DNA of 64,000 bases. It comes from Octopus bimaculoides. Lineage: Eukaryota. A program made the translations under genes and the position numbers. Of this stretch, positions 4,448-37,200 are shown piece after piece. Every line of letters begins with the position of its first letter. Within the stretch, counting starts at the first letter, position 1. The stretch covers positions 6,107,651 to 6,171,650 of the forward strand of contig NC_068991.1 of the NCBI RefSeq assembly GCF_001194135.2, read 5' to 3'. Under the pieces are notes generated by a model. The model saw nothing but the letters and a program-made list of their open reading frames with translations, did no database searches and was not told the origin of the DNA.

Positions 4448-7400
4448 TAAAGGTAGTCTGCTTTCTAACACAGGTACAAGGAGAGTGTAGTTGAATATAT
4501 TCATCCCAATAGTTAACCCTCTGCTTTTACTGGCCCCAGAAATATGAAATTGTAAAAGCTGCCCTCATCAGGATTTGAACTCAGATTATAAACTGAAGTA
4601 AATAAATACTGCTATGCATTTTGTCTAACACTCTACTGGTTCTACAATTCACTGCCCTTTTGTCAAAATTGATTATTTCTTTTGACTGTTCATGAGGTTG
4701 AATCTGAAGAGGGAGCATTTATGGACCCATTTGAAATAGACTTTATATTCTCAAATATCTGGTGTATGCATGAACATGCATACACAGCCTCACTAATGAG
4801 GCCAGTACCACATAAAACGTCATACTCTTAAAAATAGTTGGCGTCAAGAGAAACCATGCCAAAGTAGCTGTTGGAACTTGATGCAGTCCTCTGGTTTACC
4901 AATTCCTATCAAAGCATCCAACTCATGCCAACATGGAGCACAGATGTTAAATGAGGATGAAAATGATGATGATGATCACTGCACTGCGGATATTGGATGA
5001 TAACTCTCACACACACATACACATGCACTTAAAACCAGATCAATCCCGATGAAGCTAACCTACAATCAAGATCTATGGCTAGCCCATCGTTTTTTAGGAG
5101 TATCTAGGGTTACGTTCTCTCATGCATTCTTTCTTTATTTCAGACTGTAGGATGAGAAAGATTTGGTTACTATTTATAGCTGGTTGATCAGTGACACTGG
5201 GAATCCCTCGGTTGGTTCAAATTATTACTAATGGCATCTGCGACATTATCTCTAATATCTATTTTCCGTACTGTTGAATAAGTCTGAAAGTACTTCAACC
5301 TCATGTCTGTGTCTGCAGCATTGGTTCTGCATCCATTGTCCATACTAGTGGCATTAAAGGAGCACTCTGTCGGTTATGACAACGAGGGTCCCATCTGATA
5401 TGATCAACAGAACAGCTTGCTTGTGAAATTAACATGCAAGTGGCTGAGCACTCCACAGACACGTGTACCCTTAACATAGTTCTCAGGGAAATTCAGCATT
5501 ACACAGTGTGACAAGGCTGGCCCTTTGAAATACAGGTACCACTTGTTTTTGCCAGCTGAGTGGACTGGAGCAACGTGAAATAAAGCGTCTTGCTCAAAGA
5601 CACCACACGTCGCCGGGAATTGAACTCACGACCTTACGGCATAAGTTGAACAAGTCTGTACTACTGCTCAGCTCACAATATTTCTCACTGTATACCATGA
5701 AGTGTATATCTACCAATTGACAAGCTATGTCAAGGATTTCTTTAAAATGGAAGGAAGAGCTCCAATCCACAGAATCAATCCTATAGTACGAGTGCCAAGT
5801 TGACTGTGGCAAAATTGGAACTTGGAACTGGAGAAACAAAACTGAATACTTATCAAACATTTTGTCTGATGTTCCTCAAATACCTTGAGAAAATATAGAA
5901 AGGTTTCTACCTCTCTCGTTCACATACGGTATATAGATTGGTTTCAGTTCTATATTTAAGACATGAGGAATTATGTACATTATTTACATTTGACGGATAT
6001 CTGTCCTCATCTTGTTTGTTAACACGTTTCGGCTGATAGACCCTCCAGCCTTCATCAGGTGTCTTGGGGAAATTTCAAACCTGGGTTCTCATTCTGAAGG
6101 TATTTTTCAATGCTATTATTATTGGTTAAGAGTGTGGGCTACTAACCCGAAAATTCAGAGTTCGATTCCAGGCAGTAACGTGAATAATAATAAAAATAAT
6201 AATAATAACATTGAAAAATACCTTAGGAATGAGAACCGAGGTTCGAAATTTCCCTAGGACACCTGATGAAGGCTGGAGGGTATATCAGCCGAAACATTGT
6301 GTTAACAACAAACAAGTTGAGGACAAATATCCATCAAATGTAAATAATGTAGATTGGTTTCATTAGTATCAGTATTTTACTAGAGTTTATTTAATTGACC
6401 CTGGAGGGTAAAAGGTAAAATTGGCTTTGCATATTCTAGGTTAAGAACTGAGGTTTTTAACTAGAACCATAGATAATTTAGACTAGGTCTCTTTTCTATC
6501 ATATGTTCCAGAGAAAATGAGAATCAAATTGATACATCATATATTTCAGAAAACCATTCAAATCAGACATTGTTCATAAATTATTAGTAGAATTACTAGA
6601 AAAGCCATCATTCATTTTATTTAATTACTTTGTAATTTATTATTTTGGTGCTTACAGTGGGTACCACATTTCAATATGCTTGCAGTGGGCATGTTAAGGC
6701 AATTATAAGTTTTCAGTGGAATGAACCCACAATTTTGTTTCAATTCCTCTTTTGGAAACTGTTTTACTTCACCTACATTATTCATACACTCACGAAAGAC
6801 CTGAATATCACCACTTCTATTTTTTACTCCATTAAAAACGGCTCTGTGTCTGTATGGAACTGCTTTATTCAAATGATGTATTATTTTGGAAAAACTAATA
6901 AAGGTTTGATTGAGTTACCTATAATTACAGTCATATACACTTAAATGTTAATTGCTTTTCTAAAGTAAAATTTAATTTATCGACTGATAAACTTTTTGTG
7001 TGTCTCTGAATATTTTGTGATGCTTTACAAAATACCTTGATAACACCTGTACTTAATGGCTGTGAATCTTATTTTTAAAACACTTCTGAGCTTACCTGAA
7101 TCAAATGCTAAAATTTGTACTAAAATGTTCACAGATTTTACCTTTTAATTTTTGTTTATTTAATAGCCGATCAAGAGGCAGAGGACGGAAAAATTTTGCT
7201 TTGAATATGTTAGAACCTCTGTTAACTGAAGTACCAGAAGAAGGTGAAAATGGTACTAAAAACTTTGAGGTAAATCCTTGATGTAACATTACTTGATCCT
7301 AATTAATGTAGAATAGTTTTGTTCTCGTTTTAATTGCGAAGGTAATTATTTTAAATACAATTGTAATTAGATGTTTATTGATTTTGCTGAATTTAAGTAG

Positions 7401-9856
7401 TGTGCACTCATAAACATAATGCTTCTCTTCAGTTAACTACTAAAGAATGTTCTTTTGCTTCTAGTAATGATTGATAATGTGTAAGCCAGTGTTGAAGTGA
7501 ATCAGAGGAGATATGGAATGGGGTAATTAGAACTGTCCTCAATGGATTGATGTAACGAAAACAGATTCGTGGTAGCAAGAGAAAGGGGGAAGTTTGTAGT
7601 CATAAGAAATGTGCCGAAATATAAGTACATGAATGGTATATGAGGAAATGTTGGTAAACTTTGAACCTAATTTTAACACTTTTTGTCCCTCCAGGGTTAG
7701 TAGTTATTTTAAATTAATATTAAAACTAATGTACATCTGGAAAAAGATATACTTTGTGAGAGAATGCAATACCTTCTGATAGCAATTGAACCACACAGTG
7801 GTGATTAGGTGAACATGCTAATGATTATGTTTATAATTAACATTTATTTTATTATTATTTCAAATTAATCCATTTATGTTTAGTTCATAATTAATATCTC
7901 AGGCTCGTGCTTCATTTATTTTTGTATTTAAAAAAAACATTTTCTTCTTTTTTTGTTGTCTCAAGTATAGATCGTAAAACCTTCTTCAAAATGTAAATTA
8001 AATTACAGTTGATTTTAAAAAAAAAATATTTGTTGCTGTTGTTTAGCTGGATTTTATTTACTTATCATTTTATTTAAGTTCTGTCTTATGAATTTGTCAC
8101 AACTGAAAAATTATCATTATTATTGTTGTTATTGTTGTTGTTGTTGTTGTTGTTGCTGTGGTTCAAAGAATGGATTAGTTGATGCTGAATATCTCCAATA
8201 AGCAGATTTATTCTATAGAGATTAACCAGTTATTTGCTATTTATCACTTTTGGTGGAATCAAAACTTTGGTAGGCCTCAAAACCAAATGAACAAACCCTC
8301 ATTTAATTACTAATTTCACCTGATCCCTAATCCAACACTTTGTCACGAATGTATCATCTTGTTTGGGTCTCTTGTTTTTATATTTGTTGTTGTAATAATT
8401 ATAGTAAAGGAGTTTGCTTGTGTCATAGAAATACCAAAGCACAGCTTGTGCCCTTCAGATACCCTTCTGAAACAAATTTTTTGTGTGTTCCTGGGTGCCA
8501 CAATAGGAATAATGTGTTGAGTACAAGATTCCTTTGAGCTTTTGTCTTCAGACCAACTATAAAAGATGTCAAATGAGTGCAAACAAAAATGCAAGAGATA
8601 GGTAAACAGGAGAATAACCTTAGATTGGGTGGGTATATAAAAGAAAGTATATAGTATTTAGTTTTTAGATGGTCACAGCACTCTTAACATTTATTTATAA
8701 AGCTGTAGTTCTTTAAATGTAGTAGATGTGTTTGTGTGTGTGTGTATGTATTTTGTGTGCTGGTGCCACGTAAAAGCACCCAGCACACTTGTAAAGTGAT
8801 TGGCATTTGGAGCAGTTGTAGAAACCATTACAAATCAGACTGGAGCCTGGTGCAGCTCTCCAGCTTCCCAGCATGGACAATAGCCATTAAATGAAGATGA
8901 TGATATATATATGTATATATATAGTTTGTTGCAAGGAGAGATTGGGTAGTGGAGTATTTAATGTAGTAACAATAAGAAATATATGAAGGGGGCTTTTCTG
9001 ATTCATTCAGTGTTTCTCTTGAGTAACAATAGATATATGCAACTGTTGTGTCTTTTTGCTACTCAACCATCTAGCTACTTCATCAGCAGAGAATAGACAT
9101 GTGCAGTCATTAACCCTTTAGCATTCAGATTTCTGTGTCAAATGTAATACTTATTTATTCACATTGTTTTGAACTAATTATGCATAATCTTTTTGCATTG
9201 AGATTTCAATGATGTGATCAAATATTTGTAGGGTGGGTGCGAGAGGTCAGATCTGGTTAGTTTTAACATAAATCAGGCAGGATATTTAGGCCAGATATGG
9301 CTGGTTTGAAAGTTAAAGGGTTAAAGTATCTCTACTATTTAGATTGTTGAGTAATAACTATGTCATATAATAATTATATTATTTGACACTTACACACAAC
9401 ATGCTGGTTTTTGTATGTATCATAATGGCCATTTGTAATGTGTTTCTATGAATTAATTGTAATATAACTCTGGTATAGCAGATATCATAAGTGCTGTGAC
9501 AGATCCTAGACAACAAAAAGATATTAAAATTTAAGTAAAATAAACTTGTTTTGAATAGATACAAATTGTGGTTTCTGACATTTTCGTTTTTCTTAATACA
9601 TTTCTTTACATTTTTCTTAAACGTACAATAGACATTTGATCATTTTGAAATACAAGCACTGCAGTGGTTGACATAGACTAAAACTTGTGATATAAGGCGT
9701 AAGAGTGGCTGTGTGGTAAGTAGCTTGCTTACGAACCACATGGTTCTGCGTTCAGTCCCACTGTGTGGCACCTTGGGCAAGTGTCTTCTACTATAGCCTC
9801 GTGTCGACCAAAACCTTGTGAGTGAATTTGGTAGACGGAAACTGAAAGAAGCCCGT

Positions 9857-9907
<51 letters not shown>

Positions 9908-12900
9908 ATGTTTGTGTCTGTGTTTGTCCCCCGCAACATCATTTGACAACCGATGCTGGTGTGCTTATGTCCCCATACCTTAGCGGTTTGGCAAAAGAGA
10001 CCAATAGAATAAGTACTAGGCTTACAAAGAATAAGTCGATTTGCTTGACTAAAGGCGGTGCTCCAGCATGGCCACAGTCAAAATGACTGAAACAAGTAAG
10101 AGTATATAATCAAGCTAAATAAATAGTTTTTTTTTCTCTTCCTTCTTTTTTCTTCTTCTGCTTTCTACTTCACGTAATCCTTTATTGAAATGAAAATATC
10201 CTTCTTAAATTAAAGGAATAATATAGCTTGATTGTTTTAGAAACAGTTAACAAGTAAAATACGTTTGTTTTAGCTCATGATTATTTTTCATTTACTGATA
10301 CACAGCAAAATATTTTTCTTCATTTAAAACATAATCATTCATTATTATCAAATCTCAAATCAAAAATACTAATTGACCCTTGAAGTCCAAGTGTATACAT
10401 AATAGACATTGATGTGCAAAGAATGGAATACAAGGTTTAATTTTCCAAACAAACTTCTTTTTTCCATTAATTCAATCTGATGAGAAATAGTAATATCCAT
10501 AGCTTTTCTAGGCAGTCCTAGGCTGAGGATATGGACATCCGAGTCAGATTCATATGTCTAATGTACTTTTTGATGTTGCTTTTTTTTTTTTTTTTTTTTT
10601 TTTGCTTCTGTTTTTTTTAATGGTCCTTTTTTTTTTGTGGGGGGAGGAAATTTCCACGGTGAGGTAGTTGCAGAGAGATGTAGATATCAGGACGAAAGAA
10701 TGTGCTGAGTCTAATGATCAAAACAGGATTAGAAGTGATGGAAGGAGGTAAGGTGGGTGGAAGGGGTGGACTAAAGTAGTAGACTTAATATGCATTTAGT
10801 ATCTAGTAAATAGAAATGTAGCATTGGATGGAGTTAATGGAATTGTAAGTTACTGGTTTATGTACAATGGTAAATTGAGACTTATTTACCTATTGAATAC
10901 AAGACAAGTGAAGGAAATATTTTATCAATTACATTTATACTGACATTATGCAGTTAGCCTTAATTCCAGTTATCTTATTTAATCTTTTAGGAACATCAAT
11001 TTATTATAGAAAAGAAAGATATGGAAAATTATGATAAATTTCCTGTTTGGAAAATTGAAGCGGGAAGACTTCAAAAATATGAACTAGTAAATGAAGATGG
11101 GAAAATTAGACACAGAGCTGTGCCGACAGTAAGTAATTTAGAATACTTTCTAAATGTCTCTTTTTGAATTGAAGTGCAAAAAGTTGTTCTTAACTTGCAG
11201 CATTGTTCGCACATCGGACAAAATGCTTGGCAGCATTTTTTTCCGGCTCTTTTACGTTCTGAGTTCAAAATTCCGCTGAGGTCTACTTTACCTTTCATCC
11301 CTTACAGGATTGATAAAATAAAGTACCGGTCATATACTGGGGTTGATGTAATCGACTTGCCATCCCACCCACCCCTCAGAATGTCTGGTGCTGGACCCTG
11401 CAACAGACTGATGGCTCGTTTCAGTGGGGGGAGGATGATGTGATTTTGATCACTTGGAAACTGAGCGATTGGCTTTATGAGTCGTAGGGGTTCAAGAAAA
11501 CGCAAAATATTATTTACATTAAATTTATTTGTTTACATAATCTGCATACTTTTTTATAAGGTTTTTCATCTTCAAATTTTTAAGGAAACCTTGATTACAC
11601 TTTGGAATATTCACTGATTTTCTTCTCCTCCTTTGTTCTATTTTTATTGGTTTTTTTATAGACAATAACGAATGCTAATTGCTACATTATAAGCCAGTAG
11701 AGATAATCGAATTCATGGACAGTCCTCTATCTCTGCGGTTTTCTTTATCATTTCTTGAAATTTTAGCTTGTATGCCATCATTTGTTCTACAACCATCAGT
11801 ACCAAACTAACAACTGAATTTATTATTTGAATGGAATTAGGGAATGCAATTTGCAATTACTGTTTGTACTAAACGCTACTCAGTTTTCTTTCTCTGTGAT
11901 AAGCCAAACTCCATTCATTTCAGCAATGTTTGATCATTACCATATTCTTCCTAAACCAGTAGGTTTTGTTTTGGTATCGGCTATAAACAAGTTTTATAAA
12001 AGCTTGGTCTTGGAATTCATTATAATCCTTCACGTAAATGATTTGTGAAAAATAACTTTATAACTAAACAAAAACCTTAAATTGAAATTTTAAAATGATG
12101 TTGTAACAGAATGGTTGTCATACCGGTTTCTAAGCCATAGATCTTAACTGATGTAATCATTAGTCATCGCCACCTCTATATCAGCACCAGCCTCGTTATT
12201 CTGAGAGCATCTATTTGCATCATTTTCAGATCTAAACTTACCTCATCATTCATCTTCTTCCTTGATCTACTTTACTATGTGAACCTCCATCTCCTGGTTT
12301 TTGTTGAGCCAGAATGCATCATCCATTTGCCTGTCCGTAGCAGTGCTTTGATTTTGGTCTATAGACATTAATCAACACCTCTCCTGCTTATGCTCTTCCT
12401 TGTTTCATATCCAGTCTTTCTCATAAGTTACCAATATCACATCTCAGGGAATCATACTGAAGTTGTTTCTTTTAAATCACTGTAGATCCTCCGCATTTTC
12501 TATATGTTATGACTTTCACACATGTCTCATGTAGAGTATAGATTAAGGAATTGAAGGCCTTTACTTTCCAACAAGAACAGTAAGTTCTTAAAACCATCTT
12601 TCATCACCTTCAAACCTTGGACATTCTGCAGCTACAATTATTTAGTCCTTTGCCTGTGTTGTGAACATATCCATTTTATAAAATTGTGTACGTGTGAGTG
12701 TTGATGCCTGAATGGTCTTTGAGATATTAATAGCATCACGACAGAAGGTTTTTTTTTATATACTGATCTAAGTCTGTTTATCATTATTTCGCGCGCATCA
12801 TTTACTTTTAAAAAACTTTATAATATGAAGTTAAGGCTGACTTTTGAATAATCTTTAATCTTTGGAAATGTCATTGTTTGCTCAGTCATGGTACTTTCTG

Positions 12901-14092
12901 TCTATTTATATCTAACGGTACCTTTATATTTAATGTTGCTTTCAGTGTGCTCACAGCTATCAGCAGATTTGTGATTCAGCTTTTTAATTTTTTAATTTTT
13001 TTTTCTAGCAACAACTAATTTTTTTCTGGGTTTTTTTGTTAATTTTTTTTTCAACTAAATATCAAAATGTGGTTTTTAGGATTCTTTTATTGTTGGAGAT
13101 TTCAACTGCAGAAAACTAATTTTAATTCACTGCACAGTAGCATTCTCTCTTTGCCTTTTCTCTCTCTTACACTTCCTGACTCTGCTTTCTACTGACATAT
13201 CAGTAAAAACTTCTCTCCAAATTATAAGTTTGATTCCAGCATCAGCTAGGTTTTGTTGATTCCAGTCTCCTTTCATATTTGTCGGGTGTTTTTGAAGAAA
13301 GACAGTGGTTTTAATTTACCTATGTCAGTTGTACCAAATATAAACTTGGATATTTAATGATTGGTGTTTGAGGAAAATTATGCAGAACATCATGGAAGCA
13401 TAATTGATTAATTCTGTATAAGAAAATAGTATTTCTAGCTTTACTCTAAAACAGAATCGGGGGTATATAACCCTTAAAGCAACAGGTCTGAGATATCTTC
13501 TCTTATAAAAAATTCATTCTCCATTTTGTCATATGTAAATTTTCTTAAAGCATTATGTTGATCAACACTGAATATAATTACAAAATTTTCTATTGGTATA
13601 ATTAAATTGAGTTAATTACTGTAGTTTTCTTCGTCATTGAATTTCTATGATAATGTTTTTCTTTGGTCTCTTTATTTAACAGTATAGAACTTGGACTGCA
13701 GCCTGGAGAAAACAGTTCAGTCCTATTAAAACCAAATTAATTTCTCAAGGGTTTAATTCAGAAATTGTAGAAGTAGAAGATGAATATTTTCCAAGACCCT
13801 CATATAAAAACAGGTAAGAGACAGTGTTTGCTTCTTATCTAACTTTTAAGTATTTTTTTTGGGGGGGGGGGACACACACAAAAGAAAACTTATTGTTGTG
13901 GGAGAATATACAAAAAATAACAACAGACGAGGACAGGTGGTGTAAATAACAAAAGTATATATTAGTATGACGCTCGGGAATACGGAAAGTCTTTGACGTT
14001 TCGAGCTACGCTCTTCAACAGAAAGAATACGGAGACAAGGAGAAAAACACGGAGAAAAAAAAAAAAAATTGAATTGTTGCTTCTTCTTCTTG

Positions 14093-14133: not shown

Positions 14134-15727
14134 GTTTTATTATTACCAACCTACCTGAGAGCACTCTTTATTTTAAGATGCAAACTTCTTGTTTTAAAGT
14201 AAATTGAAACCTTCCATCACAATTCCCTGTTAATTTATGTTCGAAACTCCAGCTTAATAACGACAAATTTATTTTACTAAATTCTTCATTATCTTCAAGA
14301 TTAATTAAAACAAAAGGCTGTGTATTTCAACAGAAATATGGGAACAAAAGGGTTAAGAGTGTCATGGACATGAAAACGATGACGATGATTTCTTGTACAC
14401 AATACATTCTATAAATATTTATAAAGTATTAACAGCATTCATTATGAATTTCTCTTTCTTGGTTTTCTTTATTCACATATTTAGTTTATTCGCCACTCTT
14501 TGCAATTGGTTCTTGTTCTCATACTTAATGGTAACTTTTGCATTACAGACACTCAAAAAAAGGAAAAGGAAAAACATTTTTTAAATAATTCTTTTGTTTA
14601 AATCTTGTAACAGGATATTTGATTATCTTTTTACTCTGTAAAATGGTTGGGAAGGTTTTGAGAGAAATGTGTTTGCTAATTCTCACAGGTTGACTGTCTG
14701 CATAGAGACTCCTAAACTCACATCCTTGCTATCCACATGGTTCCAGGTTCAGTCCCACTGCGTGGCACCTTGGGCAAGTGTCTTCTACTATAGCCTCAGG
14801 CCAACCAAAGCCTTGTGAGTGGATTTGGTAGACAGAAACTGAAAGAAGCCCGTCGTGTGTGTGTGTGTGTTTGTCCCCCCCCCCCCACATCCAATCACTT
14901 GACAATCAATGTCAGTGTTTACATCCCCGTAACTTAGCGGTTCAGTGAAAGAGACCAATAAAATAAGTACCAGGCTTACAAAGAATAAATCCTGGGGTCG
15001 ATTTCTTCAACTAAAAGTTGGTGCTCCAGCATGGCTACAGTCAAATGACTGAAACGAATAGCAGAATAAAATGAACTGTTTCGTTTAGTTTTGTATAAGC
15101 CCTAATTTTATCATCTGTTGTCTCTTTCTTTCTCGCTTTTAGACTCTGATGTGTTGCTTTCATTTTGTATATGTAAAACTATAAATTCACAATTTTCCAA
15201 TCATGACTGTTTTATTTCAGTGAAATATCAGAACCCTGTCCTCAAGTGAAAGAGCTTTCTGCCCAACAGCCTGATCTCGCTCCATCACCCTTGGTGGCCA
15301 AAGAAAGGTCCGACAGTGAAAGTGAAGAAGAAGAAGATGAGGAAGGAGATGATGATGACGATGACGAGAAGAGGAATTCCGAATCTTCTGAGAGTGAATC
15401 TGAATCTGACATAGAAGATGCTCCTGTACATAATTTTGAGGTGTGAATCGTAGCGCAACCTATGAACACATTTATTTTGTCACAGTTGGCAAGTGGAAAT
15501 AACTCTTTAACTGTTCATGGCGTCAACAATGAAGTAGTTGTCATCTGCCATTCTACTGGGGCACTTTAAGCTAATAATGGGTAGTAGGGAGATGGCAACA
15601 AACAGGTTTTTTAAAATTTGTTTTTACTATTTAGTAACTTATTCATATCAGTACCTATGGAATTCCTTTTTACTTATTTAATTTACATACACACACACAC
15701 ACACACATATATGTATGTGTATATATG

Positions 15728-15758
<31 letters not shown>

Positions 15759-15769
15759 GNNNNNNNNNN

Positions 15770-15809
<40 letters not shown>

Positions 15810-16740
15810 GTACACCAACCCATGCAAGCATAGAAAAATGGACATGAAATAATGATGGTAATGATGAAGATGTCATTTGTGTGTGTGTGTATGTGCATGT
15901 GTGCGTGCGTGCATACTTATATGCAAAAAGGTAAATGGTTCCCGTCATTTTGGATGATAAGTATTCCAGCCATTCGATCAGCTCCCCCCCATACTCATTG
16001 AATTATAAGAGTAAATGCAAGTGGCTTGGTATGCTACTGGCATTTGTCTCTTCAATTGATATCTTCATGCAGAATCAGTGTGTACTAAGGTCGTCTTTTG
16101 GACTACAATGTGCAGTGTGCCCAGAAGGCTTCCACAGTTTCTGCCTGCCCCCTATTTTAAGAAGGCTTGGCACAACCCAAAGCTGTGTGAAAAGCCCACC
16201 ATCTCCCCCCCGCTGCCCAAGGTGCCATGCAGTAGGATTGAACTTAAGACATGGTTGCACACACACGCACACACACACGCACACGTAGTTTATTTTACAC
16301 ATTTAGTGTTTTAGCAAAAAATCTTCAGAGATGTACTTGCATTGCAAATGTTTTGAGACTGTGTGCCGAAACTAAAACAATTGCAGTGTAGAAGACACAA
16401 GTAAACTATTCAGAAACAGAAAAATCCACCTACTTCATTTAAATATTTAAATGAAGTTGACAGTCTTTTTTTTTTTTTTTCTGAATGACTAACATGTCTT
16501 CCACAGTGCAATCACAAAAAATCTCCACATTTGCTAATCCATTGTTCCTTGTTTCAGACGAGCTGTGTTTGGATTAGTGGAACCAGAGATTTTATTTTTT
16601 ACTAAAACATTAAACATGTAATACAAAACTATTTGCTCTACAGATTTATTTGATTTGTATGGTATCTCTTTTGGGTTTCTGGTCTCCATGATCGTTGATC
16701 TAAAGAATTTTCCAACACATATATACAAACATGTGTGCAT

Positions 16741-16775
<35 letters not shown>

Positions 16776-18194: not shown

Positions 18195-18227
<33 letters not shown>

Positions 18228-18553
18228 ATATATATATACATGCACACACACACACACACACACAAACATATATAATATAAATGTATATATATGTATGCAT
18301 ATATAAATATGTATATGTTTATAATATACATATGCCTGTGTGTTTGTGGTGTGTGTGAAAAGTAAAAATATAACATAACAGAAAGTTAAAATATTATTTG
18401 CTCTAGTTGTATTATAATTTGTTACTTCATTAATCTAGCAGACAAGTTTGCCAGATAACTGACCTAAAAGTTTATGTATAATTTTTTCTTTTTCTTTTTT
18501 TTTTTCCTACTTCGAATACTTTGATTTTAAATATTGAAGTTTTTGTTCTTCTT

Positions 18554-18595
<42 letters not shown>

Positions 18596-22703: not shown

Positions 22704-22751
<48 letters not shown>

Positions 22752-23031
22752 GTACATATACACGCACTCACACTCATATACATACATACATATGTGTGTC
22801 TCTCTCTGCTGGAATCTGAAGTTTTAGGCTCTGTTATTACTCAGTTTTGCAACTCCCACTAATCACATAAAATTGATCTGTGTTCTGTGACTCATAATGT
22901 TTAAATCAAAGTATTTATGAATGGACAAGTCATTGGATAAAAAGAAATGTGTCAGTTGAAAGATCTTATAAAAATAATACAAAATGGTGTGTGTGTATGT
23001 ATGTATGTATTTATCTCTCTCTATATATATA

Positions 23032-23080
<49 letters not shown>

Positions 23081-24997
23081 TATATCAAGGTGGTGCTCCA
23101 GCATGGCTGCAAGAATATATATGTATATATATTATATATATTAAGACTGGCCGCTCATAAATATTTATGTCATAAACATTGTATCTCATACGTCTTAGAT
23201 CAGTTACATGATCGGCAACATACATGAAACTCTGAGTAGTAAGCGGGAGTAATCGTAACACTACATTAAATATTTACACTTTACTTCTATATTGAGTACT
23301 TCTTATTTACACATTTGTAAACTGAAGTGTTTGTATGTGTGTGCATGCATGTGTGTTTTATTGAAAACATGGTTGTGTTGTAGTATTATCTTTCTGTTTT
23401 TTTTTTTATCAAGTGTGTTTTTTAATACTTTTGTATTAAGTTGCTTACAGTTTGTTTGGAACAGTAAAGTCCCCAAATCCATCATTGTCTCCAGACCATC
23501 ATGGTCTCATATTCAGAATGAAGTGATACTGGCATGTTTTGCTGCTAGAATTTGAATGTTTGACTTGTTAGATTTCTCTGTCATAAGTCAAGTGTTTCTA
23601 ATTGTTTGTGATCAGTGTATATAATGCGTGTGTATTTTAGCATTGTGCTGTGCAGTGAATTTTGCTTCCATCATGAATTGTTCTGTGAGGGATTTCATGT
23701 AGAATACATCTGTTGTTTACTAATATTTTTCTTACCTAGTTTTGTTTGCGTTGTGTGATATAGTGCATTTCAATTGCTCCTTGTTGTATACACTAGCCAT
23801 AATCAGCGATGAACCCCTTACTGGTGATATATAAACCTCATTGGTCAGAAATTCAGTTTCTGGTTTTTGTCTCTGCAAAACAAATCTTATGGGTTCTGCC
23901 TACTATAAAGTGGTAGCCATACCATGCCAACATCACTCCATCCTGAGGATGAGACTGTGAGGGTCTAGAAACATTACTGGATCAGGGAGTCTTACTCTTC
24001 TAAGCAAATTGCAAGAAACTCTTGTGAGAATATGAAGGGAAAAAAATGATGTAAAAGACAAATCTAGGACACAATGTGTTTTCAATATATGTTTAAAAGA
24101 AAGCTATTGCCCTTATATATAAATGTGTATATGAATGTGTATGTGTATAAATTCATATATTTATATGCATATATATATATATATTTACAAACACACATAT
24201 ACTTATGTACATAAGTGCATGTGTGTGTGTATGTTGTATAATTTAAGCCTCTTTCCTCTCTCTCTCTCTCTCGAGCTTAATTTCTTGCCATTCTATTTTC
24301 TAAATCTGTATTATTCAACTTTATAGCAAGCACAAACACATATTGACTTTAATTTTTCCCAAAAAGAAAAAAACTTTTTTAATAAGTCATCAAATTCTTA
24401 GCAACTTTTTGTTTCTTCTCTCAAATCTTGCGCGCGCGCACGCACACACACACACATACACATGCAACACAATATAATTAAAAGAAACATTAATCATGTA
24501 CCATGTTGAGTATATTATATTCTTAAGGCTTGGCTACTTGTCTTATGCCTGCCAAGTTGCTTAAAGATTTTTTTTTTTTTTTCATTAATAACATGGATCT
24601 ATTTAAGCTGTATTTTATCATAGATTTATTCTCACATATTTCTAAATATTTTTTAGCTGAAACAGAGTTGATTAATTTTTTTTTGTTGTTGTTTATGTGC
24701 TTCATTTTGAATTGTGACACATATACTCATTACAAGATCTCACTAATCTTACTAGCTGTAAATCCTCATTTTTAATAATACTACATAACTCTTATTGCTC
24801 TCAAAGAAAGAAAGAGAGAAAGCATTTTCAATGTCTGACTAACTTTGAAATCAATGTGTGTGAAGTTTGATCTCTGTTGATGTTTCTATTGACTTCGGGC
24901 ATGTAAATCTAGCCATTTTGACTTAATTAAAATAGATTCTATTGCATGGATTGCTTTGATCTGTTTCTGTCATTGCATCAGCATAAAAAAAAAAAAA

Positions 24998-25028
<31 letters not shown>

Positions 25029-25903
25029 NNNNNNNNNNNNNNNNNNNNNNNNNNNNNNNNNNNNNNNNNNNNNNNNNNNNNNNNNNNNNNNNNNNNNNNN
25101 NNNNNNNNNNNNNNNNNNNNNNNNNNATACCACTTAGCCATACAGTCTTTCAAAAGGGAATAGAATATCTATAAGTTATAGTTTCTATTCTGTTTGGCTG
25201 AAAACACAACCAAAAGACAACAACTACACCAACAAGTACCAGAAAGTCAAGCCCTCAAAAAAATAATATTCTAAGTATATAATAACTTTTAATAACATAT
25301 CCTCATGCAGGGGTCAAGCTTTGCCCAGGTTTGTTGAAATTTTTCCTTTTTTTTTTTCCTATTTCTTTTGGGGTTGTGTAATCTTGGCTTCATATTAAAA
25401 TACCAAAAAAAAAAAAAAGTATAAATATATATGCTAAGTTCTTTTTAAAAAATAAGAAATTTGACAATCAAACAATGGAAGATTTTATTGGAACTGTTGT
25501 AAGAAAATTGATATAAAAGAGTATTAAAAAAAGAAGTTATTATTTTCCATTACTCTTCTATTCATTAAAATACTGTAAATGCAAGTATGAACTTTCCAAT
25601 ACTACAACAGGATCACCAGTTTCATGTGGAAGCGGTTTTTGCACTCTTTCTTTAAATCCTCAAAAATACAAAGAATCTATTTTATATTTTAGTGTTACTA
25701 CATATATTTCTATGGCTTCTGGTCTTTTTTGTCTTTTTCTTTCTTTCCTTTCTTTCTTTAATTTTTTTTTTTTTTTTAAGAAACATATTTTTCTCTTTGC
25801 TTGTCTTTTCTGGTCCTGATTTGTTCTGGTTTTGTTGGTGTCTGTATACAAAGTCTTAAATTGTTGCTTGGCTCAGGACATGCATATACATATATACATA
25901 CAT

Positions 25904-25940
<37 letters not shown>

Positions 25941-26533
25941 TACATACTTACATATATACATACATATACACACATATATGTATGTATGTATTTATATATG
26001 TATATATAACTTTCAGTCATTAGCCAAAGAAAATGACAAAGCTTTTAAAAAAAAATATTAAAAAGGAAAAAAAAAAGACATGTAGGAAAGAGAAAAGATG
26101 GTTGCATTGCTTCTATATACACACATATATATACATACATACATACATATATATANNNNNNNNNNNNNNNNNNNNNNNNNNNNNNNNNNNNNNNNNNNNN
26201 NNNNNNNNNNNNNNNNNNNNNNNNNNNNNNNNNNNNNNNNNNNNNNNNNNNNNNNNNNNNNNNNNNNNNNNNNNNNNNNNNNNNNNNNNNNNNNNNNNNN
26301 NNNNNNNNNNNNNNNNNNNNNNNNNNNNNNNNNNNNNNNNNNNNNNNNNNNNNNNNNNNNNNNNNNNNNNNNNNNNNNNNNNNNNNNNNNNNNNNNNNNN
26401 NNNNNNNNNNNNNNNNNNNNNNNNNNNNNNNNNNNNNNNNNNNNNNNNNNNNNNNNNNNNNNNNNNNNNNNNNNNNNNNNNNNNNNNNNNNNNNNNNNNN
26501 NNNNNNNNNNNNNNNNNNNNNNNNNNNNNNNNN

Positions 26534-26566
<33 letters not shown>

Positions 26567-26754
26567 CATACACATATACACAGTCTGGATAAAGATACAA
26601 TGGATGACCTGATGTAAATGCTTACTTGTATCCATTATGTGCATCCTACTTTGTGGGTTGAACCACTGACAGTTGCCAGACTTACCTTTGAAGGAAGGAA
26701 GCCATCTCTTATTTGTTTGGGCTCATCACTACAGTTTTCTGTTTTTATTTAACA

Positions 26755-26790
<36 letters not shown>

Positions 26791-27659
26791 CATCATATCA
26801 CTATATCAAAAAAAAGCCTGTGTTGGATATTCCATTAGAGAACACTTTCAAAAAAAGAAAAAAAAATTAAAAAATAACAAAAACAAAACAACTTGACTTC
26901 TCATCAACCTTCTTATTACAAAGAAACGAAAGAGAGAGTGAGAGAGTGAAACATACAAAATGAAAAGAAAAAAATTACAAAAACAAAAAAAATACAACAA
27001 CAAAAAACAAAAGTTCTAGCAATCAGTCACTCTGACCGTTTTAGAAAGATAATCAGACCATATTCGTTCTATACTTTACCCACAGTAATGCTGTAAGTAT
27101 AATTTTTACTAAATTTACTTCAGTTCATATTTTATTGATATAACAAAATAATAAGGAATCTGATATTTTCCTGTTTATTTATTATTTTTTTTTTATTTAA
27201 TTGCATATATCATTATATCAGTTCAATTTTTCTTACCATAGTACGTGTTTTTTTTTTTCTTTTTGTATTAAGAGTTTGAAAAAAGAAAAACTGTAAATCA
27301 TTATAGCTGTATGCTTATTAATGTAGTATCTACATTTTCCAAGTCAACCTAGTATTTTGTCAGTCAATATTTTTAATTGTACAGCCTAAACTGGGAAACT
27401 TTGGTTTTATTATTATTATCATTATTATTATTATTATTATTATTATCTTTATCATCATCATCATCTTACAGCATCATGATCTATTGCTCTTGATATTCCA
27501 CAAAAATATCTATAAATTTAATTCTTGAAAATCAGGTGGAATAATGTTCTAACTGTTCAATCAAATAAATAGGAAATTCAATACTAACTTTAGAATTCTT
27601 TATTTAAGCAAGATAAATGAAAAACTAGTTCTGTCTTGATTTAATAATATTTTGCAAAC

Positions 27660-27706
<47 letters not shown>

Positions 27707-28109
27707 NNNNNNNNNNNNNNNNNNNNNNNNNNNNNNNNNNNNNNNNNNNNNNNNNNNNNNNNNNNNNNNNNNNNNNNNNNNNNNNNNNNNNNNNNNNNNN
27801 NNNNNNNNNNNNNNNNNNNNNNNNNNNNNNNNNNNNNNNNNNNNNNNNNNNNNNNNNNNNNNNNNNNNNNNNNNNNNNNNNNNNNNNNNNNNNNNNNNNN
27901 NNNNNNNNNNNNNNNNNNNNATTTAAAACCACATTGCTAACTTTCTCAGCTCCCTTTTAAAGTTTCAAGTGAAAGGTATTTTTAATCGTTTATTTAACAC
28001 CTTATGTCGTGCTTTGGAAGTGATTAGGTTTTTCTGATAAATGTTAGTAATTTCTAGTGCATTTCAAAATTGAATTTATATTATAGACTATTTAACCTCT
28101 ACACACACT

Positions 28110-28161
<52 letters not shown>

Positions 28162-31100
28162 TAACACCCATGCACACACACAATTGTATTGTTCTTAAGT
28201 AAATCTCCTTTAAACATTACAGTATTGAGGTCAGATATATTAACATTACTTCGTTTGGTTTCTGTCATGAGATTGTAACCAACTCCTGATTACTCTTGAA
28301 ATTTGTGAGCGTTGAGGGTGCTTGTGTTCTATAAAAGTACAAAATTAAAAATGCTTTTTTTTAAATTAATTTCTTAAATCAATAGACCGCTTTTTCATTA
28401 TCTCTGTGTTGTTTGGAAATACAGCCAACAACATCAGGTCAAGTCTTCCACAAAGTGCCAACTAACCTCTGCTTTTCCTTCCCATGTACTGTCTTTATTC
28501 ATATGCTGCAACATTTCTTTGTAGACTAATATTACTACTGCTAATGTTGCTGCATGTAACCATTGGTGATATTCTGTTTAGTCCTCTCTAACAATGTTTA
28601 TATTACTAGTGAAATAGGTTGTTGTTGTTGTTGTTGCTGTCATTAAGTCTTAACTATGTTTGCATTACGCAATACAAGCAGTTCTATAGTGTAAACTTTA
28701 TAAGCATAACATACTTAATGTATGTGAGTAGTTGCTAAAAACCAGAGGCTGCGGTTTTACTCCAGGAAAACTCCATTTGTGAATGTATTGTGTTAGCTGG
28801 GCAAAAATGATATCGCCCCAGAATTGACCTCAGTGTTGTGCTTACTATTTATAAAGGGTTTTTCCCCTGGATGAAAACCACAGCCTCTGGGTTTTCAACT
28901 ACGCACATAAATGTTTAACTCTTTAGCATTCAGATTACTCTCTCAAATGTATTGCTTATTTATTCGCATTGTTTTGAGTCAGTCATGGCTTGTCTCATAG
29001 CTTTGAGGTTTCGGTTATGTTAGCGTAATTTTAAAATGACATTGTAGGGTATGTGTGAGAGGCCAAATATAACCAGTTTAAATGCTAATGAGTTAAGTAT
29101 GTTATATTAATGAAGTTACTAAAATATATGTTTGTCATTAGAATTAATCAAAAGACAAACAAATTGTGAATATAGGAAAGTGTTAGTAGTTCTTACATCC
29201 AACCTTTTGTGAATTATTGTGCTGTATGACTCGTCTATCTATATTATTATTATTATTTTTGTTGTTGATTACTAGTTGTATATATAATGAAAGACCACAA
29301 CTATGTTCAGAAACTCTTTTGTCAACTCAGGAAGATATCTACTGCAAATATTTGCATTCATTTTACATCTGTCTTTTGTCAATAATCAGAATTAATGATA
29401 TCAAAATGTATTCTGAAGTGTTGCTAAACTGTAAAATATTTCTTGTTTGGTTAGTGATGACCATTTCTGTTGTAGAGAAGGATTTCGCTGTTTTATTTTT
29501 GTAATGTCTGATAATTTGGTGTGGGACCTAACGTTTCATAGCATTTCTTTTTTTATTATTTAATTGAATAATGCGGTATGATTGATGATCCCATTATTCT
29601 GACTTGGTTTCAATTCTCATTTCGAACCACTTCACCTGCATTGATAATGCACATTAATGTCACAATTAATGCACATTAATGCACATTAATGCACATTAAT
29701 GTCACAAATTCTTCAAATATAGGCTGGCATGCTGGACAAAATGTTGAACAGCACTTTGTCCATCTTTACATTCTGGGTTCAAATCCCACTGGGATCGACT
29801 TTGCCTTTCATCCTTCTAGGGTCAATGAAATACGTCCCAATTCAGCACCAGGGATTGATGTAATCGATTTGAAATTGCTGGCCTTATGCCAAAATTTGAA
29901 ATTATCATTATTACTATTATTCATATTCATCTTGGGAGGTTAGTAGGTCACGGTATCAACAGAATGCCGTACATTATTTTTGCTCTGTTTCAGTTGAATC
30001 ACCATACATTCTGAATTTAAATCTTATTTGTATTGACTCAGCGTATCCTTCCTCCGCAGTTGATAAAATAACAATCTTTGCCAAGTTGATTTGATCAGCA
30101 GTTCTCTGTGTAGCCATGTATTCCTATATTAGAAATCACCATTATTGTTCCATTCACTTTGCCAGTGCTCCTAGGAATGTCACCGACTGCCATCTCCATT
30201 CCTCTCGATGTATATTGTAATGCCTGCTTCGCAAAATAGCTCACACTTCCTTACAACAGCCACTGTTAGTACTCTTGTAACGCTATTACTCATTTTACCC
30301 CAACATTAGTAAATACCTAACGTGTGTGTATGTGTTATATTCGTGGCTGTGTGTTTGCTTCCCAACTACATGCATGGCAGCTTNNNNNNNNNNNNNNNNN
30401 NNNNNNNNNNNNNNNNNNNNNNNNNNNNNNNNNNNNNNNNNNNNNNNNNNNNNNNNNNNNNNNNNNNNNNNNNNNNNNNNNNNNNNNNNNNNNNNNNNNN
30501 NNNNNNNNNNNNNNNNNNNNNNNNNNNNNNNNNNNNNNNNNNNNNNNNNNNNNNNNNNNNNNNNNNNNNNNNNNNNNNNNNNNNNNNNNNNNNNNNNNNN
30601 NNNNNNNNNNNNNNNNNNNNNNNNNNNNNNNNNNNNNNNNNNNNNNNNNNNNNNNNNNNNNNNNNNNNNNNNNNNNNNNNNNNNNNNNNNNNNNNNNNNN
30701 NNNNNNNNNNNNNNNNNNNNNNNNNNNNNNNNNNNNNNNNNNNNNNNNNNNNNNNNNNNNNNNNNNNNNNNNNNNNNNNNNNNNNNNNNNNNNNNNNNNN
30801 NNNNNNNNNNNNNNNNNNNNNNNNNNNNNNNNNNNNNNNNNNNNNNNNNNNNNNNNNNNNNNNNNNNNNNNNNNNNNNNNNNNNNNNNNNNNNNNNNNNN
30901 NNNNNNNNNNNNNNNNNNNNNNNNNNNNNNNNNNNNNNNNNNNNNNNNNNNNNNNNNNNNNNNNNNNNNNNNNNNNNNNNNNNNNNNNNNNNNNNNNNNN
31001 NNNNNNNNNNNNNNNNNNNNNNNNNNNNNNNNNNNNNNNNNNNNNNNNNNNNNNNNNNNNNNNNNNNNNNNNNNNNNNNNNNNNNNNNNNNNNNNNNNNN

Positions 31101-32691
31101 NNNNNNNNNNNNNNNNNNNNNNNNNNNNNNNNNNNNNNNNNNNNNNNNNNNNNNNNNNNNNNNNNNNNNNNNNNNNNNNNNNNNNNNNNNNNNNNNNNNN
31201 NNNNNNNNNNNNNNNNNNNNNNNNNNNNNNNNNNNNNNNNNNNNNTATATATATATATATGTGTGTACATAATATGCATTTATTATGTTTCAAAAGATAG
31301 ATATTTTATAAATGTTATAGAGATAAATATTCATATACATAGTTATATTTTTACATGCATGTATACATTACTCTTTTACTGGTTTCAATCATTGGACTGT
31401 GGCCATAACTGGTGAACTGTCTGGAATTGTAATATTTATGGATGAGGAAGTTTTTTCATGTTACTGCTCTGATATGAATTTCATAGTCCTCTTCAACTTC
31501 ATCTTATTCAGTATAATATCTTGGTTGTCTTTGAATATATTGTCATTTATTTTATGCATATCTCGTTCAGATTTCACATAGTATGTGTTGAATAACCATA
31601 GTCCTTTGAAACCCCTATTATTATAACAGTATATAATCCATACTTGACAGGGAGGGAGTGGTATTCTTGAAACTGCAATTATACACAATTATACAAACTC
31701 ATACACACACACACACACACATACTGTTTATGTATATTGTAATGACACAAGTGCGTAAAATATATTGGTTTATGTTATAGAGGAATTAAACCAGTAATAT
31801 ATAGCTCAACAAAATTACAAATAAATATCTTAAGTCTCATCTTTTATGATATAAAATATATGTGTGTGTGTATATACATGTATGTATTTGTGTATATATG
31901 TATGTGTGTGTGTGTATATATGTGTGTGTGTGTGTGTGTTTATGTGTACATGTAAACAAAGGAATAACTCATCATGACAAATAACGTTAGGTCTGTTTTT
32001 CTGCCACTTTGACAATATCAGGTAATGTTTATACACCGACAATAATTTTACCCTTTTTTTTTTTCATATTTTGTGCTGAACGACCATTCATGATATGAAT
32101 ATTCCTTTGCAAAATGAACCTGTTTATTAAATTAAAAGCACATGAAACGTAGCAAATTTCTTGTCTATATATCTCTGATGTGCATTATTAATATCGCTGC
32201 TACCGTTTAACTATTAACTAATTACAGATGTAACATTATCTGTTCTTACCAGCTGTGACAAAACTGTTCCCAATATTATCTATCAAGGGAGATAAATACA
32301 TAAGATTAGTTATTTCCCTTTAGGGGCTGGGCAAATAGTGATGGAGACATACTGCAAATTTTTTTATTGTTTGTACGATTTCAATTGTGTATGAGATCAG
32401 TTGGGCGTGGTGAAAAATACTTTATGCCATAAATATTTAATGTCATCTCTTAATCTTCCAAAATTGTTTTTCATCCTTATAAGGTTAATAAAATAAGTAC
32501 CCATAAAGTATGTTTATGCATACTAGGATAAGCATGGCTACAGTCCACTGACTGAAATCTATAAGAAAATATATGTAAAAATAAATTCATACTGTGTGTG
32601 TGCGTGCACATATTCGTGTATGTGTTTGTGTACTTATGTGCATATCTGCATACGTCTCAGTTGTATGCATGCATATTGATATGTGTGTGTT

Positions 32692-32725
<34 letters not shown>

Positions 32726-34100
32726 CACATGTTGAATGAATGACAAAGGAGTACTCGATGCATGTAGAAGATATGGTTTTTTGTTTTTTTGTTTGTTTTT
32801 TTTAAATGAAGCTGGAGTTAATCTTATGACATTAGTTTCTCATCACTGATCTTTAGGTGATAGTCTGGCCTGAAGATTGCAGTGGCATGAAACTTGAGTC
32901 ATGAGGCAAAAGTTTTAGCTTCGTTTTCATTAAAAACCTACATGTCTCTCTGTTCCTCTCTCTTGCACACACAGGCACTTGATGAACCATATTCTAGTTT
33001 TATGTCCTTAAAATTTAACTCTGTGTTTGCAGAATAATTATAAATTTAATCACAAATATACACATGTTCTGAGTTCAAATTTCACCAAGATCACCTTTGC
33101 CTTTCATCCTTTCGGGGTCGATGAATTAAGTATCAGTTGCATGCTGGGGTCGATCTAATCAACTGCCCCAAATTTTCAGACCTTGTGCTTAGAGTAGAAA
33201 AGAATAAATATATACATATGCTTAACATCTTTTAAGAATATATTTTGTATAATGTTTTGCTATTTTTAGTAATACTTAAAATGTAGTCTTTGATTTGTTC
33301 TTTATTTTTATTGTAATTCCTTTACTCCAGATTTTACGTGATAAACAAGTTGTGAATATGTAAGTGTGTGTGTGTGTGTGTGTGTATATGCTGTGTTGTG
33401 TGATTCTGTGTGTGGGCCAACAGCTTAGACAAAAGCACAAACAGATCAGATTGGAGCCTGGTGCAGCCTACTGACTTACCAGTCCCCAGTCAAACCTTCT
33501 AACCTATGCCAGCATGGAAAACGGACGTTAAACGATGATGATGATATGTATATGCATTTATATTCTCCCATGTAAATCCACATGGGAGACGGACTCCCCC
33601 ACTAGAAAACTTCAGTGTTTGTAGGTTTTGGTGGTATCATTCCTGTTTTTTTTTTTGTTGTTGCTGTTTTAATGGCTTCAAACCTTTAGAGAGTAGCACA
33701 TGTGTTGCACAAGCATTTGTCACCATAAAATTTGATGTGTTCGTTACATTTTGTGCCATTTTCATTTTTTCCCCTGGCACAAAATAGGACTCAAGCTTTT
33801 CAGAACCTCAAACAGTTGTAGTTTTGTGGTGGCAGTTGAGATGTTAGGTGCATCTTTGACCACAATATAATCTCTACTTGCATGTTTCTCTGGCTCCTCA
33901 TAGGTTGGTTGAAGTGCCGTCAATGTGTAGTGGCGCCTTGGTCTTGAAGAGGCTGTCGTATGTCTTCATCAGCGTTATCATTGGGGTACAAACAACAAGT
34001 TGGCACTGCATCTGTAGATTTTAGCATAATGGGGATCACACTGGATAAGATGTTGCCATCCACATAATTTGTGTGTGTATTGGCATATGTTTGTGTGTGA

Positions 34101-34132
<32 letters not shown>

Positions 34133-34168
34133 ATATATAAGCATGCCTGTATGTGTATGTATGTGTGA

Positions 34169-34204
<36 letters not shown>

Positions 34205-37200
34205 CCACCCATTCTAGCATGGAAGGCAGACGTTAAACAATGATGATTATATATATATATATATATATTTATATGCATACATACATGTACATGTGTGTGT
34301 TTGTATACATATATGTGTGCGTGTAGATACACACACATATGCTGATATAAAAGTTTCATTTGATGGCTAATTCGGCCATCAAGCGAAAACACATTTTAAA
34401 GGAATTTAACTCTACTACTGGTGCTGAGTCCCCCGTCATTAAATGTTTGGTTGTTATTCTTAAAATTGCTTCAGAATAATAACCATGTGCACACCCACAC
34501 ACTGGTATGTGTGCGCATAAATTCAAATGCACATGTATATGTGAATTTCGTAAGCAGTTTCATTGTTTGTTGTTGTTTTTCTCCTAGAAACAATTTGTGT
34601 GTATATAGAGTAATTTACAAGTATATTACTACATATGTATATACACATGTACATATACACATACATACACTCACACTTCAAACTTAATTTGTTTTAAGAA
34701 TAAATACATTTTTATAAATTTAAACACTTGTGCAATCGTTTATGATGTTTGGCTGTTTATAGTAGTAGTATTACTTACGAAAATGCACAGACTGTTTTGT
34801 AGTTATATTTTAATGCCTCTACCCTAAACATATGTGATTAACTAGTTTTAAAACATGCAACTTGTATTTTAACAGTCCTTTAATACATCTAGTTTTTAAG
34901 CTAATTTCAACCAGTTAGTAGTGTTACTATATTTAGAAAGTATTAGCTGTCGTATAAACATTTCTTCTCCAGATAATATTATCAATTTTTACCAGTTTAG
35001 AAGTTTATTTAGCAATAAAATAAATTAAAATCATTATGGGTTATTTATATTAATTACTAAAAACATTGGTCAAAATGTTAATATATTTCTTCACAAAAGT
35101 GTGTCACCATATTATGTTGTAATTTGATAGATCTTCTAAAATATTTTCTTCATTATTTTCATAATTAATTAATTTATAATTTCTTTAAGTTTGCTATCCT
35201 TTCTACATGTACATGTTCCGTTGTAACTGTTTTGATAAACTTAGGCTATTTTAATTAGTTAATTCTTTACAGGTTTATGATTAAAATAAAAGAATTTCAA
35301 CTCATGTTTGTGTTTCTTTTTCTGAATTGTTCACAGCCCGGAAAGTTTATTATTGAAGTTAAGGACCTGTCAAACTATGAAAGTTACCCCATTTGGAAAA
35401 TTGAAAATGGAAAGATGTTACACAAATACGAATTAATCATAGAAGATGGGAAAATTCGACACCGAGCTGTTCCTACAGTGAGTGTTTCTTCTTTCTACAA
35501 TAAAATGTCTTCTATATTTATTATGAATTATAAATTTTTTTTTCTCTATCGGTAATCATGTTAGTGATGTTTCATTTACAGTTTTCAATGTGTTTTTTTG
35601 TTTCGTATGTGTATTTGGTGTGCAGGATTCTTGATGTGAATACGTGTGTTGAAAGAAATACTATTACCGGCATAATGCCTCTCCCAAGGTTTTATAGTAT
35701 TGTGTTTTTTATTTTGTTGTATTGTGGTAGGATCATTAAAGTGATCATGTCAAAAATGTTACAGGACTTTCCTTCCAACCTTAACAGTAAATGGAAAGTC
35801 ACAAAAACTTGCTGATTTATTTTCAGTGACAAATCAAATGCACTTATATACGGAAATCATTGTCTAGTTTGTTTTTAATGCCTACTTTTCCACATTTGCA
35901 TGGCTCTGATGAATTTATTGAGACAGGTTTACTATGACCAGATGCTCTTCCTGTCATTAACCTTCACCTGTTTCCAAGTCATTTGATATATCTCCTGGTC
36001 TGTCATACACTAACAACCCAAGGGCCAAGCATATTTTCATGAAAGATTGCAAACAAATGGCATCTCTGGCATGATGGTAACATTTTTTTACAACTAGCCT
36101 ACAGTGTCAAGACAAGGAGATACAAACACACCCAAGCATGTGCAAACACTCACTCATGCACATGTGCATATGCATGATGGGCTCCTTTTCAGTTTCTGTT
36201 GTCCAAATTCTTTCATAAGGCTTTGGACAACCTGGGGACATAGTAGAAGGTATTTGCGCAAGGTACCAAACAGTTCCCATCAAACCTAGTTACAGTTGCA
36301 TTGTAAACCTGCTCACAAGATAATTTGTAATGATGAATGAATCTGTTTCAGTCTTTCCTAATCTTTCATTTCAGTACTCCAGTTGGATGCCAACCCTTCG
36401 TCAACAGTTCAAACCAATTAGAGCAAAGTTAATATCTCAAGGTTTCAACAAAGAAATAGTTGAAGTTGAAGAACCATTCCGGCCCAAACCTCCTAACGAT
36501 GGCAGGTAGGGTTAACTGTATTTAATTCTAAATTTTTTTTCTGGAATAAACGAATTCCAAATTCGGATTCAGCCTGAAAAGTTACATCAATAAGCTACAT
36601 CGTAAGGCGATTTCTATTCCCAGTAGCACATTGTGTCCTTCAGCAAGACACTTTACTTCACATTGCTCCAGTCCACTCAGCTGGTAAAAATGAGTGGTAC
36701 CTGTAATTCGAAAGGGCCATCCATGTCACATTCAGTGTCGCGCTGAATCTCCCTGAGAACTACGTGAAAGGTATGCGTGTCTCAGCCACTTGCACGTTAA
36801 TTTCACAAGCAGGCTGTCCTGTTGATTGAATCAACTGGAACCCTTGTCATAAGTGATGGGGTGTCAGTCAGCCAAATTTGAAGATTTTTACTTAATTTTA
36901 TAATTATCAAATCTGACAGCAGCCAAATATTCTCCACCAACAGAGACCTTTAAATCATCCATCAGTGGAACATGAAAACATAGTTTCTTTCAGTGTCAAC
37001 ACACAGACACTAACTACACATCTCAAGAAACATGCTTTGAATTTAATCCATTACTCATAGCAAAAACTTGGTTTGTGCTTAACTGTCACTCGTAAGTCAT
37101 TGTGACCTGGTAGCATGTAGTACACTGTCACTAATTGTTGTAGTTGGTTATGTAGTTGCAAGCAGGTACTGATATCTTCTTGGGTCTCCTGCTTATTGAT

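Follow-up and report, generated by a model that had tools for sequence, protein, structure and literature searches.

A duplicated three-exon cassette encodes two copies of an unnamed beta-rich domain in an octopus gene of the QSER1/PRR12 type

The window considered here is a 64-kb stretch of the Octopus bimaculoides genome, analysed over its whole length, and it carries the 3′ third of LOC106877154, a gene that can be assigned by its sequence to the QSER1/PRR12 family. Within this gene, a cassette of three exons coding for a beta-rich module of about 90 residues is present twice. The best explanation as a whole is an old duplication of the cassette, which left two beta domains that are both under selection and that would serve in docking to other proteins, and its probability is put at roughly three in four. 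Coordinates are window positions, and the + strand is meant unless stated.

Both module peptides were found verbatim, by an exhaustive HMMER search, inside the 1647-residue protein XP_014781450.1 of O. bimaculoides ('uncharacterized protein LOC106877154'). A search for exons bounded by AG and GT gave a single solution, which matches the last 492 residues of this protein exactly and thus identifies the window as the 3′ third of the gene on the + strand. A preliminary description of this DNA, made from the sequence alone, had called the product QSER1/PRR12-like, and the profile evidence agrees. The Pfam family DUF4211 (PF13926), the signature of the QSER1/PRR12 family, matches residues 1447-1559 with 63.1 bits against a cutoff of 27; only profile positions 25-137 are matched, and the match begins 7 residues past the second module copy (copy B, the first being copy A). 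The long N-terminal region (the first 1100 residues, outside the window) is of low complexity, a trait of the family, with 15.0% serine, 9.8% proline and 7.6% glutamine. AT-hook motifs are a feature of PRR12; in the octopus protein, a regular-expression search placed motifs of the RGRGRK type at 528 and 1154 (first residue) and a run of RRGRGGRG at 1022, but found no canonical RGRP core. The features of the gene within the window are as follows.

7167-7269, + strand: first exon of cassette 1, 103 nt; 2 carried bases enter; encodes (S)RSRGRGRKNFALNMLEPLLTEVPEEGENGTKNFE, with an AT-hook-like RGRGRK; NFE ends at 7269
10991-11128, + strand: module A, exon 1; 138 nt, 46 codons, phase 0-0
13683-13813, + strand: module A, exon 2; 131 nt, 2 bases left over
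15221-15440, + strand: first exon of cassette 2, 220 nt; acidic Ser/Glu/Asp-rich linker of 74 residues, net charge -24, ending in ...HNFE
15441-35336, + strand: intron of ~19.9 kb with microsatellites and interspersed repeats, without an exon of LOC106877154
35337-35477, + strand: module B, exon 1; 141 nt, phase 0-0
36375-36505, + strand: module B, exon 2; 131 nt, 2 bases left over
37753-37868, 38106-38203, 40336-40401, 40817-40936, 43442-43537, 46118-46204 and 47309-47347, + strand: DUF4211/helical C-terminal domain, seven exons to the stop codon

The four module exons are open in one frame and bounded by AG and GT. As first described, the two exon pairs have the same phases and near-identical lengths (138/141 and 131/131 nt) and encode the same ~90-residue module, with 54 identical residues; in a BLASTP alignment these are 54 of 84, with an E value of 7e-41 and one gap of a single residue. 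No further copy was found in the whole window by tblastn with either module as query. A DNA repeat search showed that the similarity between A and B is limited to the exons (repeat families D13 and D14) and absent from the introns.

The duplicated unit is larger than the exon pairs. Among about 100 homologous modules, the start of the domain has a conserved [F/Y]-x-x-G-x-F, to which the aromatic residue of NFE belongs; NFE thus forms the opening of the domain, and what was duplicated extended into the preceding exon. As the preliminary description had it, the exon before each pair (7167-7269 and 15221-15440) ends in ...NFE; the domain begins within that exon. With these exons included, the cassettes measure 103+138+131 = 372 nt and 220+141+131 = 492 nt, both divisible by 3, and each takes in 2 carried bases on entry and hands on 2 on exit, which is also the entry phase of the exon at 37753-37868. 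This is the pattern expected of tandem duplication of a phase-symmetric unit, and it upholds the exon-cassette duplication that had been proposed. In A as in B, ...AVPT is followed by a phase-0 intron at the same codon position. This internal intron seems to be old, since in other species many fragments that consist of one exon stop at profile position ~47-54. The first exons of the two cassettes are no longer alike except for NFE, one carrying RSRGRGRK and the other the acidic serine-rich linker.

Copies A and B are 65% identical in DNA and use different codons at 25 of the 54 identical residues. By the Nei-Gojobori method, the nonsynonymous divergence between them (dN) is 0.24-0.32 and the synonymous divergence (dS) is ~2, which is saturated, with a dN/dS of 0.12-0.14. 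Columns conserved across the family are kept at 25 of 29 positions in copy A and 27 of 29 in copy B, and between O. bimaculoides and Octopus sinensis one residue differs in copy A and none in copy B. These sequence comparisons show an old duplication, with purifying selection acting on either copy, as the preliminary description had proposed. In a neighbour-joining tree of modules from molluscs, brachiopods, annelids, nemerteans and insects, A and B were sisters in 43 of 50 bootstraps, a relation that assigns the duplication to the cephalopod lineage once this had parted from gastropods and bivalves. Copy B is 71% identical to the single Haliotis copy and 62% to copy A; it is the conservative copy, in the ancestral place directly before the DUF4211 helical domain.

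Copy A has changed more. It sits on the longer branch, it has lost a near-invariant glycine, a serine and, by deletion, one further residue, and its first exon is skipped in some gene models. These features could mean that copy A is a decaying remnant without function that is mostly spliced out. A remnant of this kind would not be expected to show a dN/dS of ~0.13 or to retain so many of the conserved columns, to have changed by one residue between two Octopus species, or to keep both exons intact with canonical splice sites, and this explanation is very improbable. The skipping itself is seen in O. sinensis isoform X3 (XP_029642579) and in O. vulgaris CAI9730706, which read ...GTKNFE/YRTWTAAW... 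across the junction (slash), so that exactly the 46 codons of the exon at 10991-11128 are missing. Its loss preserves the reading frame and removes the first half of the copy A fold. If the skipping predicted by these gene models is real, it may constitute a switch, possibly regulated, between a one-module and a two-module protein.

The module was considered uncharacterised in the preliminary description, and profile searches bear this out. Neither octopus copy matches a Pfam family at E <= 10, and a Pfam scan of the 62 sequences in the module alignment found no family matched by more than one member. From the 62-sequence alignment, AlphaFold2 models the module alone with a predicted local distance difference test score (pLDDT) of 91.4 and a predicted template modelling score (pTM) of 0.82, as seven strands, a long hairpin included, and two short helices; the earlier impression of a beta-rich module was thus correct. 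A Foldseek search of this model against 350,542 PDB chains gave a best E value of 0.53 with a template modelling (TM) score of 0.26, with no Tudor, chromo, PWWP or MBT domain among the top hits, and nothing significant was found in BFVD. Module B together with the remaining C-terminus (301 residues; alignment of 31 sequences) was modelled with a pLDDT of 90.3 and a pTM of 0.74, as the beta domain, a short hinge of lower confidence, and nine helices with three central strands. Foldseek returned no significant PDB match for the module with DUF4211, and a sequence search of the PDB with the C-terminal profile returned no match.

These results bear on the proposal, made in the preliminary description, that the module may be a reader-type barrel with a segment loosely like PWWP and the Royal family (Tudor, chromo, PWWP), in which case it would be an aromatic-cage reader and the octopus protein a tandem reader of histone marks. 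The module is beta-rich, the family has a chromatin context, and the conserved aromatic residues (an invariant W20, an aromatic at 31, Y48, W51 and an aromatic at 59) might suit a cage. Tudor, chromo and PWWP folds are, however, plentiful in the PDB, and a model with a pLDDT of 91 that finds no match there, and whose family shares no Pfam entry, Royal or other, disfavours the barrel. The predicted long hairpin, seven strands and two helices also differ from a five-stranded SH3-like barrel. A reader of this type is accordingly held to be highly unlikely.

The helical domain has conserved features of its own. In the part encoded by the exons from 40336 to 43537 (alignment numbering), H248 and Y208 are invariant and C187 and C257 nearly so; octopus has CQAC ... 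H-x2-Y-H ... C, and a second CxxC occurs in the insect proteins of the family. To judge from this pattern, the conserved His, Tyr and Cys residues may form a zinc site.

The two copies are separated by a long intron, and it matters whether they belong to one gene. The six gaps flagged by a scan of the window (15760-31245) all lie within the intron at 15441-35336 and are flanked by TA/CA microsatellites; none touches an exon. The junction ...APVHNFE/PGKFIIEV... across this intron recurs in XP_052827457, a model on the more recent, chromosome-scale assembly of O. bimaculoides, as well as in three isoforms from O. sinensis and in O. vulgaris. This agreement among independent models implies that no coding sequence of LOC106877154 is hidden in the gaps. 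Physical continuity over the gaps is supported by the independent assemblies, not by the window itself. Gene models from three Octopus species place copies A and B in one protein, and the O. sinensis annotation has a single gene of 136.7 kb. The gaps inside a 19.9-kb intron, the derivation of the single gene from predicted models, and the presence of long and short family members with consecutive locus tags on one contig in the bivalve Sinanodonta (ACJMK2_020156 and 020157) would all be compatible with two adjacent paralogous genes, one module each, that predictors have merged. Copy A, however, has no DUF4211 of its own, and the acidic exon at 15221-15440 joins A to B in frame and with matching phases. 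Identical junctions recur in the models of three species and in two O. bimaculoides assemblies, and O. sinensis is annotated with one gene; two merged genes are a most improbable explanation. An assembly artefact, with haplotigs or a collapsed repeat set in tandem, might be suspected from the many gaps between the copies, but it is already effectively refuted by their 65% DNA identity and saturated synonymous divergence, by their different flanking exons and by the presence of both in three species.

Outside the octopuses, the module followed by DUF4211 is found in gastropods, bivalves, Lingula, Capitella, Lineus, Hymenoptera, Timema and others, and the distance from the module start to the C-terminus is near-constant at ~290-300 residues in these homologues. 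Word-index protein searches with a single module recovered one genomic fragment, those with the 62-sequence profile three fragments, and those with the profile of module and DUF4211 arthropods only. Full-length arthropod homologues usually have a single module, as the preliminary description stated. Many insects also have separate proteins of ~200-290 residues, annotated as 'nucleolin-like' or 'glutamic acid-rich protein-like', with a DDDWTP motif, an acidic run, an AT-hook-like GRGRP/K and one C-terminal module without DUF4211; these seem to form a gene family of their own based on this domain.

Copy number is more variable than this suggests. The two copies first described in octopus stand, but the two-copy state is not peculiar to it: it recurs in short bivalve paralogues and in a leafhopper, and open reading frames (ORFs) in an ENA assembly carry 3, 4 or 6 modules. 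The bivalve first copies form a deep clade of their own, apart from octopus copy A, and these duplications are thus independent of the octopus event. In Sinanodonta woodiana, the long, single-module ACJMK2_020156 and the short, two-module ACJMK2_020157 have consecutive tags on the same contig, an arrangement that hints at the tandem duplication of a gene in bivalves, separate from the intragenic event in octopus. The four-module ENA ORF has 763 residues, is intronless and without DUF4211, and occupies 10001-12292 of a 56-kb contig, L001 (ERZ25070167). It adjoins a 772-residue ORF without a Pfam match, and an ORF with the reverse-transcriptase family RVT_1 lies ~9 kb upstream. The four-module ORF may have arisen as a retrogene or through capture of the domain by a mobile element. 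A module that is found alone, duplicated and arrayed behaves as expected of an independently folding binding module.

Human QSER1 and PRR12 have been described in terms that resemble the octopus models. QSER1 associates with TET1, and PRR12 with cohesin/NIPBL. According to AlphaFold, human PRR12 has two conserved C-terminal domains: 'binding domain 1' (1564-1677), built of eight antiparallel strands plus two helices, and 'binding domain 2' (1840-2036), in which three strands flank seven helices. Both contribute residues to a predicted interface with NIPBL, and a C-terminal PRR12 fragment co-purifies cohesin/NIPBL (bioRxiv 10.1101/2024.03.29.587394). Human QSER1 has a mostly beta-strand domain of unknown function at ~1320-1445, followed by a 90-residue linker and a helical domain with three strands (PMC13172546, 2026). 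The octopus models match both descriptions element for element, which makes the module very probably the counterpart, in protostomes, of this beta domain. The statement in the preliminary description that vertebrates lack the module is, in consequence, probably wrong, since these published beta domains lie upstream of the DUF4211/helical domain in both human proteins. A reading of the NFE ending as a cohesin-binding motif of the form [Y/F][D/E]F[D/E] was dropped, the motif being absent from five mollusc and brachiopod homologues.

How the second copy arose and what it might do can be set out as follows. In the octopus QSER1/PRR12 homologue, the linker exon, with the first residues of the domain, and the two module exons were duplicated in tandem. 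Copy A lies ~160 residues upstream of copy B, with RGRGRK before A and the strongly acidic, serine-rich linker between them. The module would act as an autonomous protein-docking domain that works with the helical DUF4211 domain, rather than as a histone reader. Docking is suggested by the PRR12/NIPBL prediction and by the position of the module next to acidic and AT-hook-like segments in proteins of nuclear type; autonomy is suggested by the confident model of the module alone, by its occurrence without DUF4211 in insects and by the 3-6 tandem copies in ENA ORFs. With a second copy, held on a flexible acidic tether, the protein would gain in valency or acquire another partner site, and skipping of the 46-codon exon would turn this extra site off with the frame unchanged. 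In a more far-reaching version, an unnamed autonomous domain with a fold absent from the PDB, bilaterian-wide and shared by human QSER1 and PRR12, works alone, in tandem arrays or beside DUF4211 and docks these scaffolds on NIPBL/cohesin or a different chromatin machine, with the octopus protein as a splice-tunable bivalent adaptor; this is offered tentatively and is rather unlikely to hold in full.

Several points weigh against the explanation by an old duplication with two selected docking domains. Copy A, with its altered glycine and serine positions and its deletion, may bind something different or nothing. The assignment to the cephalopod lineage is bounded only by Octopus on one side and gastropods and bivalves on the other, with squid, cuttlefish and nautilus outside the sample. 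A search for transcript support in Logan gave only a genomic match, so that the one-gene structure and the exon skipping are known from gene models alone. The homology with the vertebrate domain is drawn from position and from published accounts of secondary structure, rather than from a comparison of sequences or a superposition, and the contact between PRR12 and NIPBL is an AlphaFold-Multimer prediction in a preprint only.

Part of this is already known. The gene and both module copies are present in RefSeq models, and the beta domain has been noticed in human AlphaFold models, without receiving a name or a Pfam entry. No description of the duplication, the cassette structure, the lineage or the splice variant was found in a full-text literature search for DUF4211 or in the AlphaFold accounts of PRR12 and QSER1. 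QSER1 and PRR12 are disease-linked human chromatin proteins whose only annotated domain is a domain of unknown function. Their conserved C-terminal region gains a second, separable unit, a beta domain of ~90 residues beyond Pfam coverage, and this unit is evolutionarily mobile, occurring alone, duplicated or arrayed according to lineage. The octopus locus provides a natural two-copy variant with an apparent splice switch. Structural and binding work on the family gains, in practice, a clean domain boundary and a diverse alignment. As octopus biology, this variation on a known protein family is real but modest.

Some further observations concern the remainder of the gene and its introns. The models conflict 5′ of 7167. 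The older O. bimaculoides model has an exon at 2122-2196 (QHEEWDLQKLNARVVLTLKKTPKLH) that is missing from the O. sinensis models, and the newer O. bimaculoides model retains intron sequence at 7090-7166. An O. sinensis exon with SDKDPAWTP...KPKRARSRGRARGR has no match within the window and is therefore probably located upstream of it. An ORF fragment at 42611-43144 (- strand), MLHGSETWAVT...RLRWYGHV, resembles by eye the C-terminal part of a retrotransposon reverse transcriptase; it sits in an intron of LOC106877154 and is broken by a gap at 42648-42874. Interspersed repeats occupy the introns at 9728-10037 and 14725-14991, and also at 9110-9279, 20434-20617 and 28915-29095, with copies 84-89% and 60-77% identical; they have no relation to the exon duplication.

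The arrangement in octopus has partial likenesses in several known proteins. The short bivalve paralogues (Sinanodonta KAL3842094, Mactra KAL4225547, Mya WAR02848 and Ruditapes XP_060570600) have two modules and DUF4211, as octopus does, whereas the leafhopper protein (Homalodisca XP_046660476) has two modules but no DUF4211. The small insect proteins resemble the octopus pairing of RGRGRK with module A and of the acidic linker with module B; they differ from the octopus gene in being separate small genes without DUF4211. Human QSER1 shares with octopus the order of a long disordered region, a beta domain and a helical domain with three strands, but it has a single copy of the beta domain and, unlike octopus, a 90-residue linker before the helical domain. 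The latter has been labelled bMERB (PMC13172546), and the 50 Foldseek matches that were listed for the octopus model include no bMERB entry. Binding domain 1 of PRR12 is like the octopus module in its beta-rich make-up and in lying on the N-terminal side of the DUF4211/helical domain. In PRR12 it is present once and is followed by a linker of ~160 residues before the helical domain, whereas octopus has two copies and the two domains abut in protostomes.

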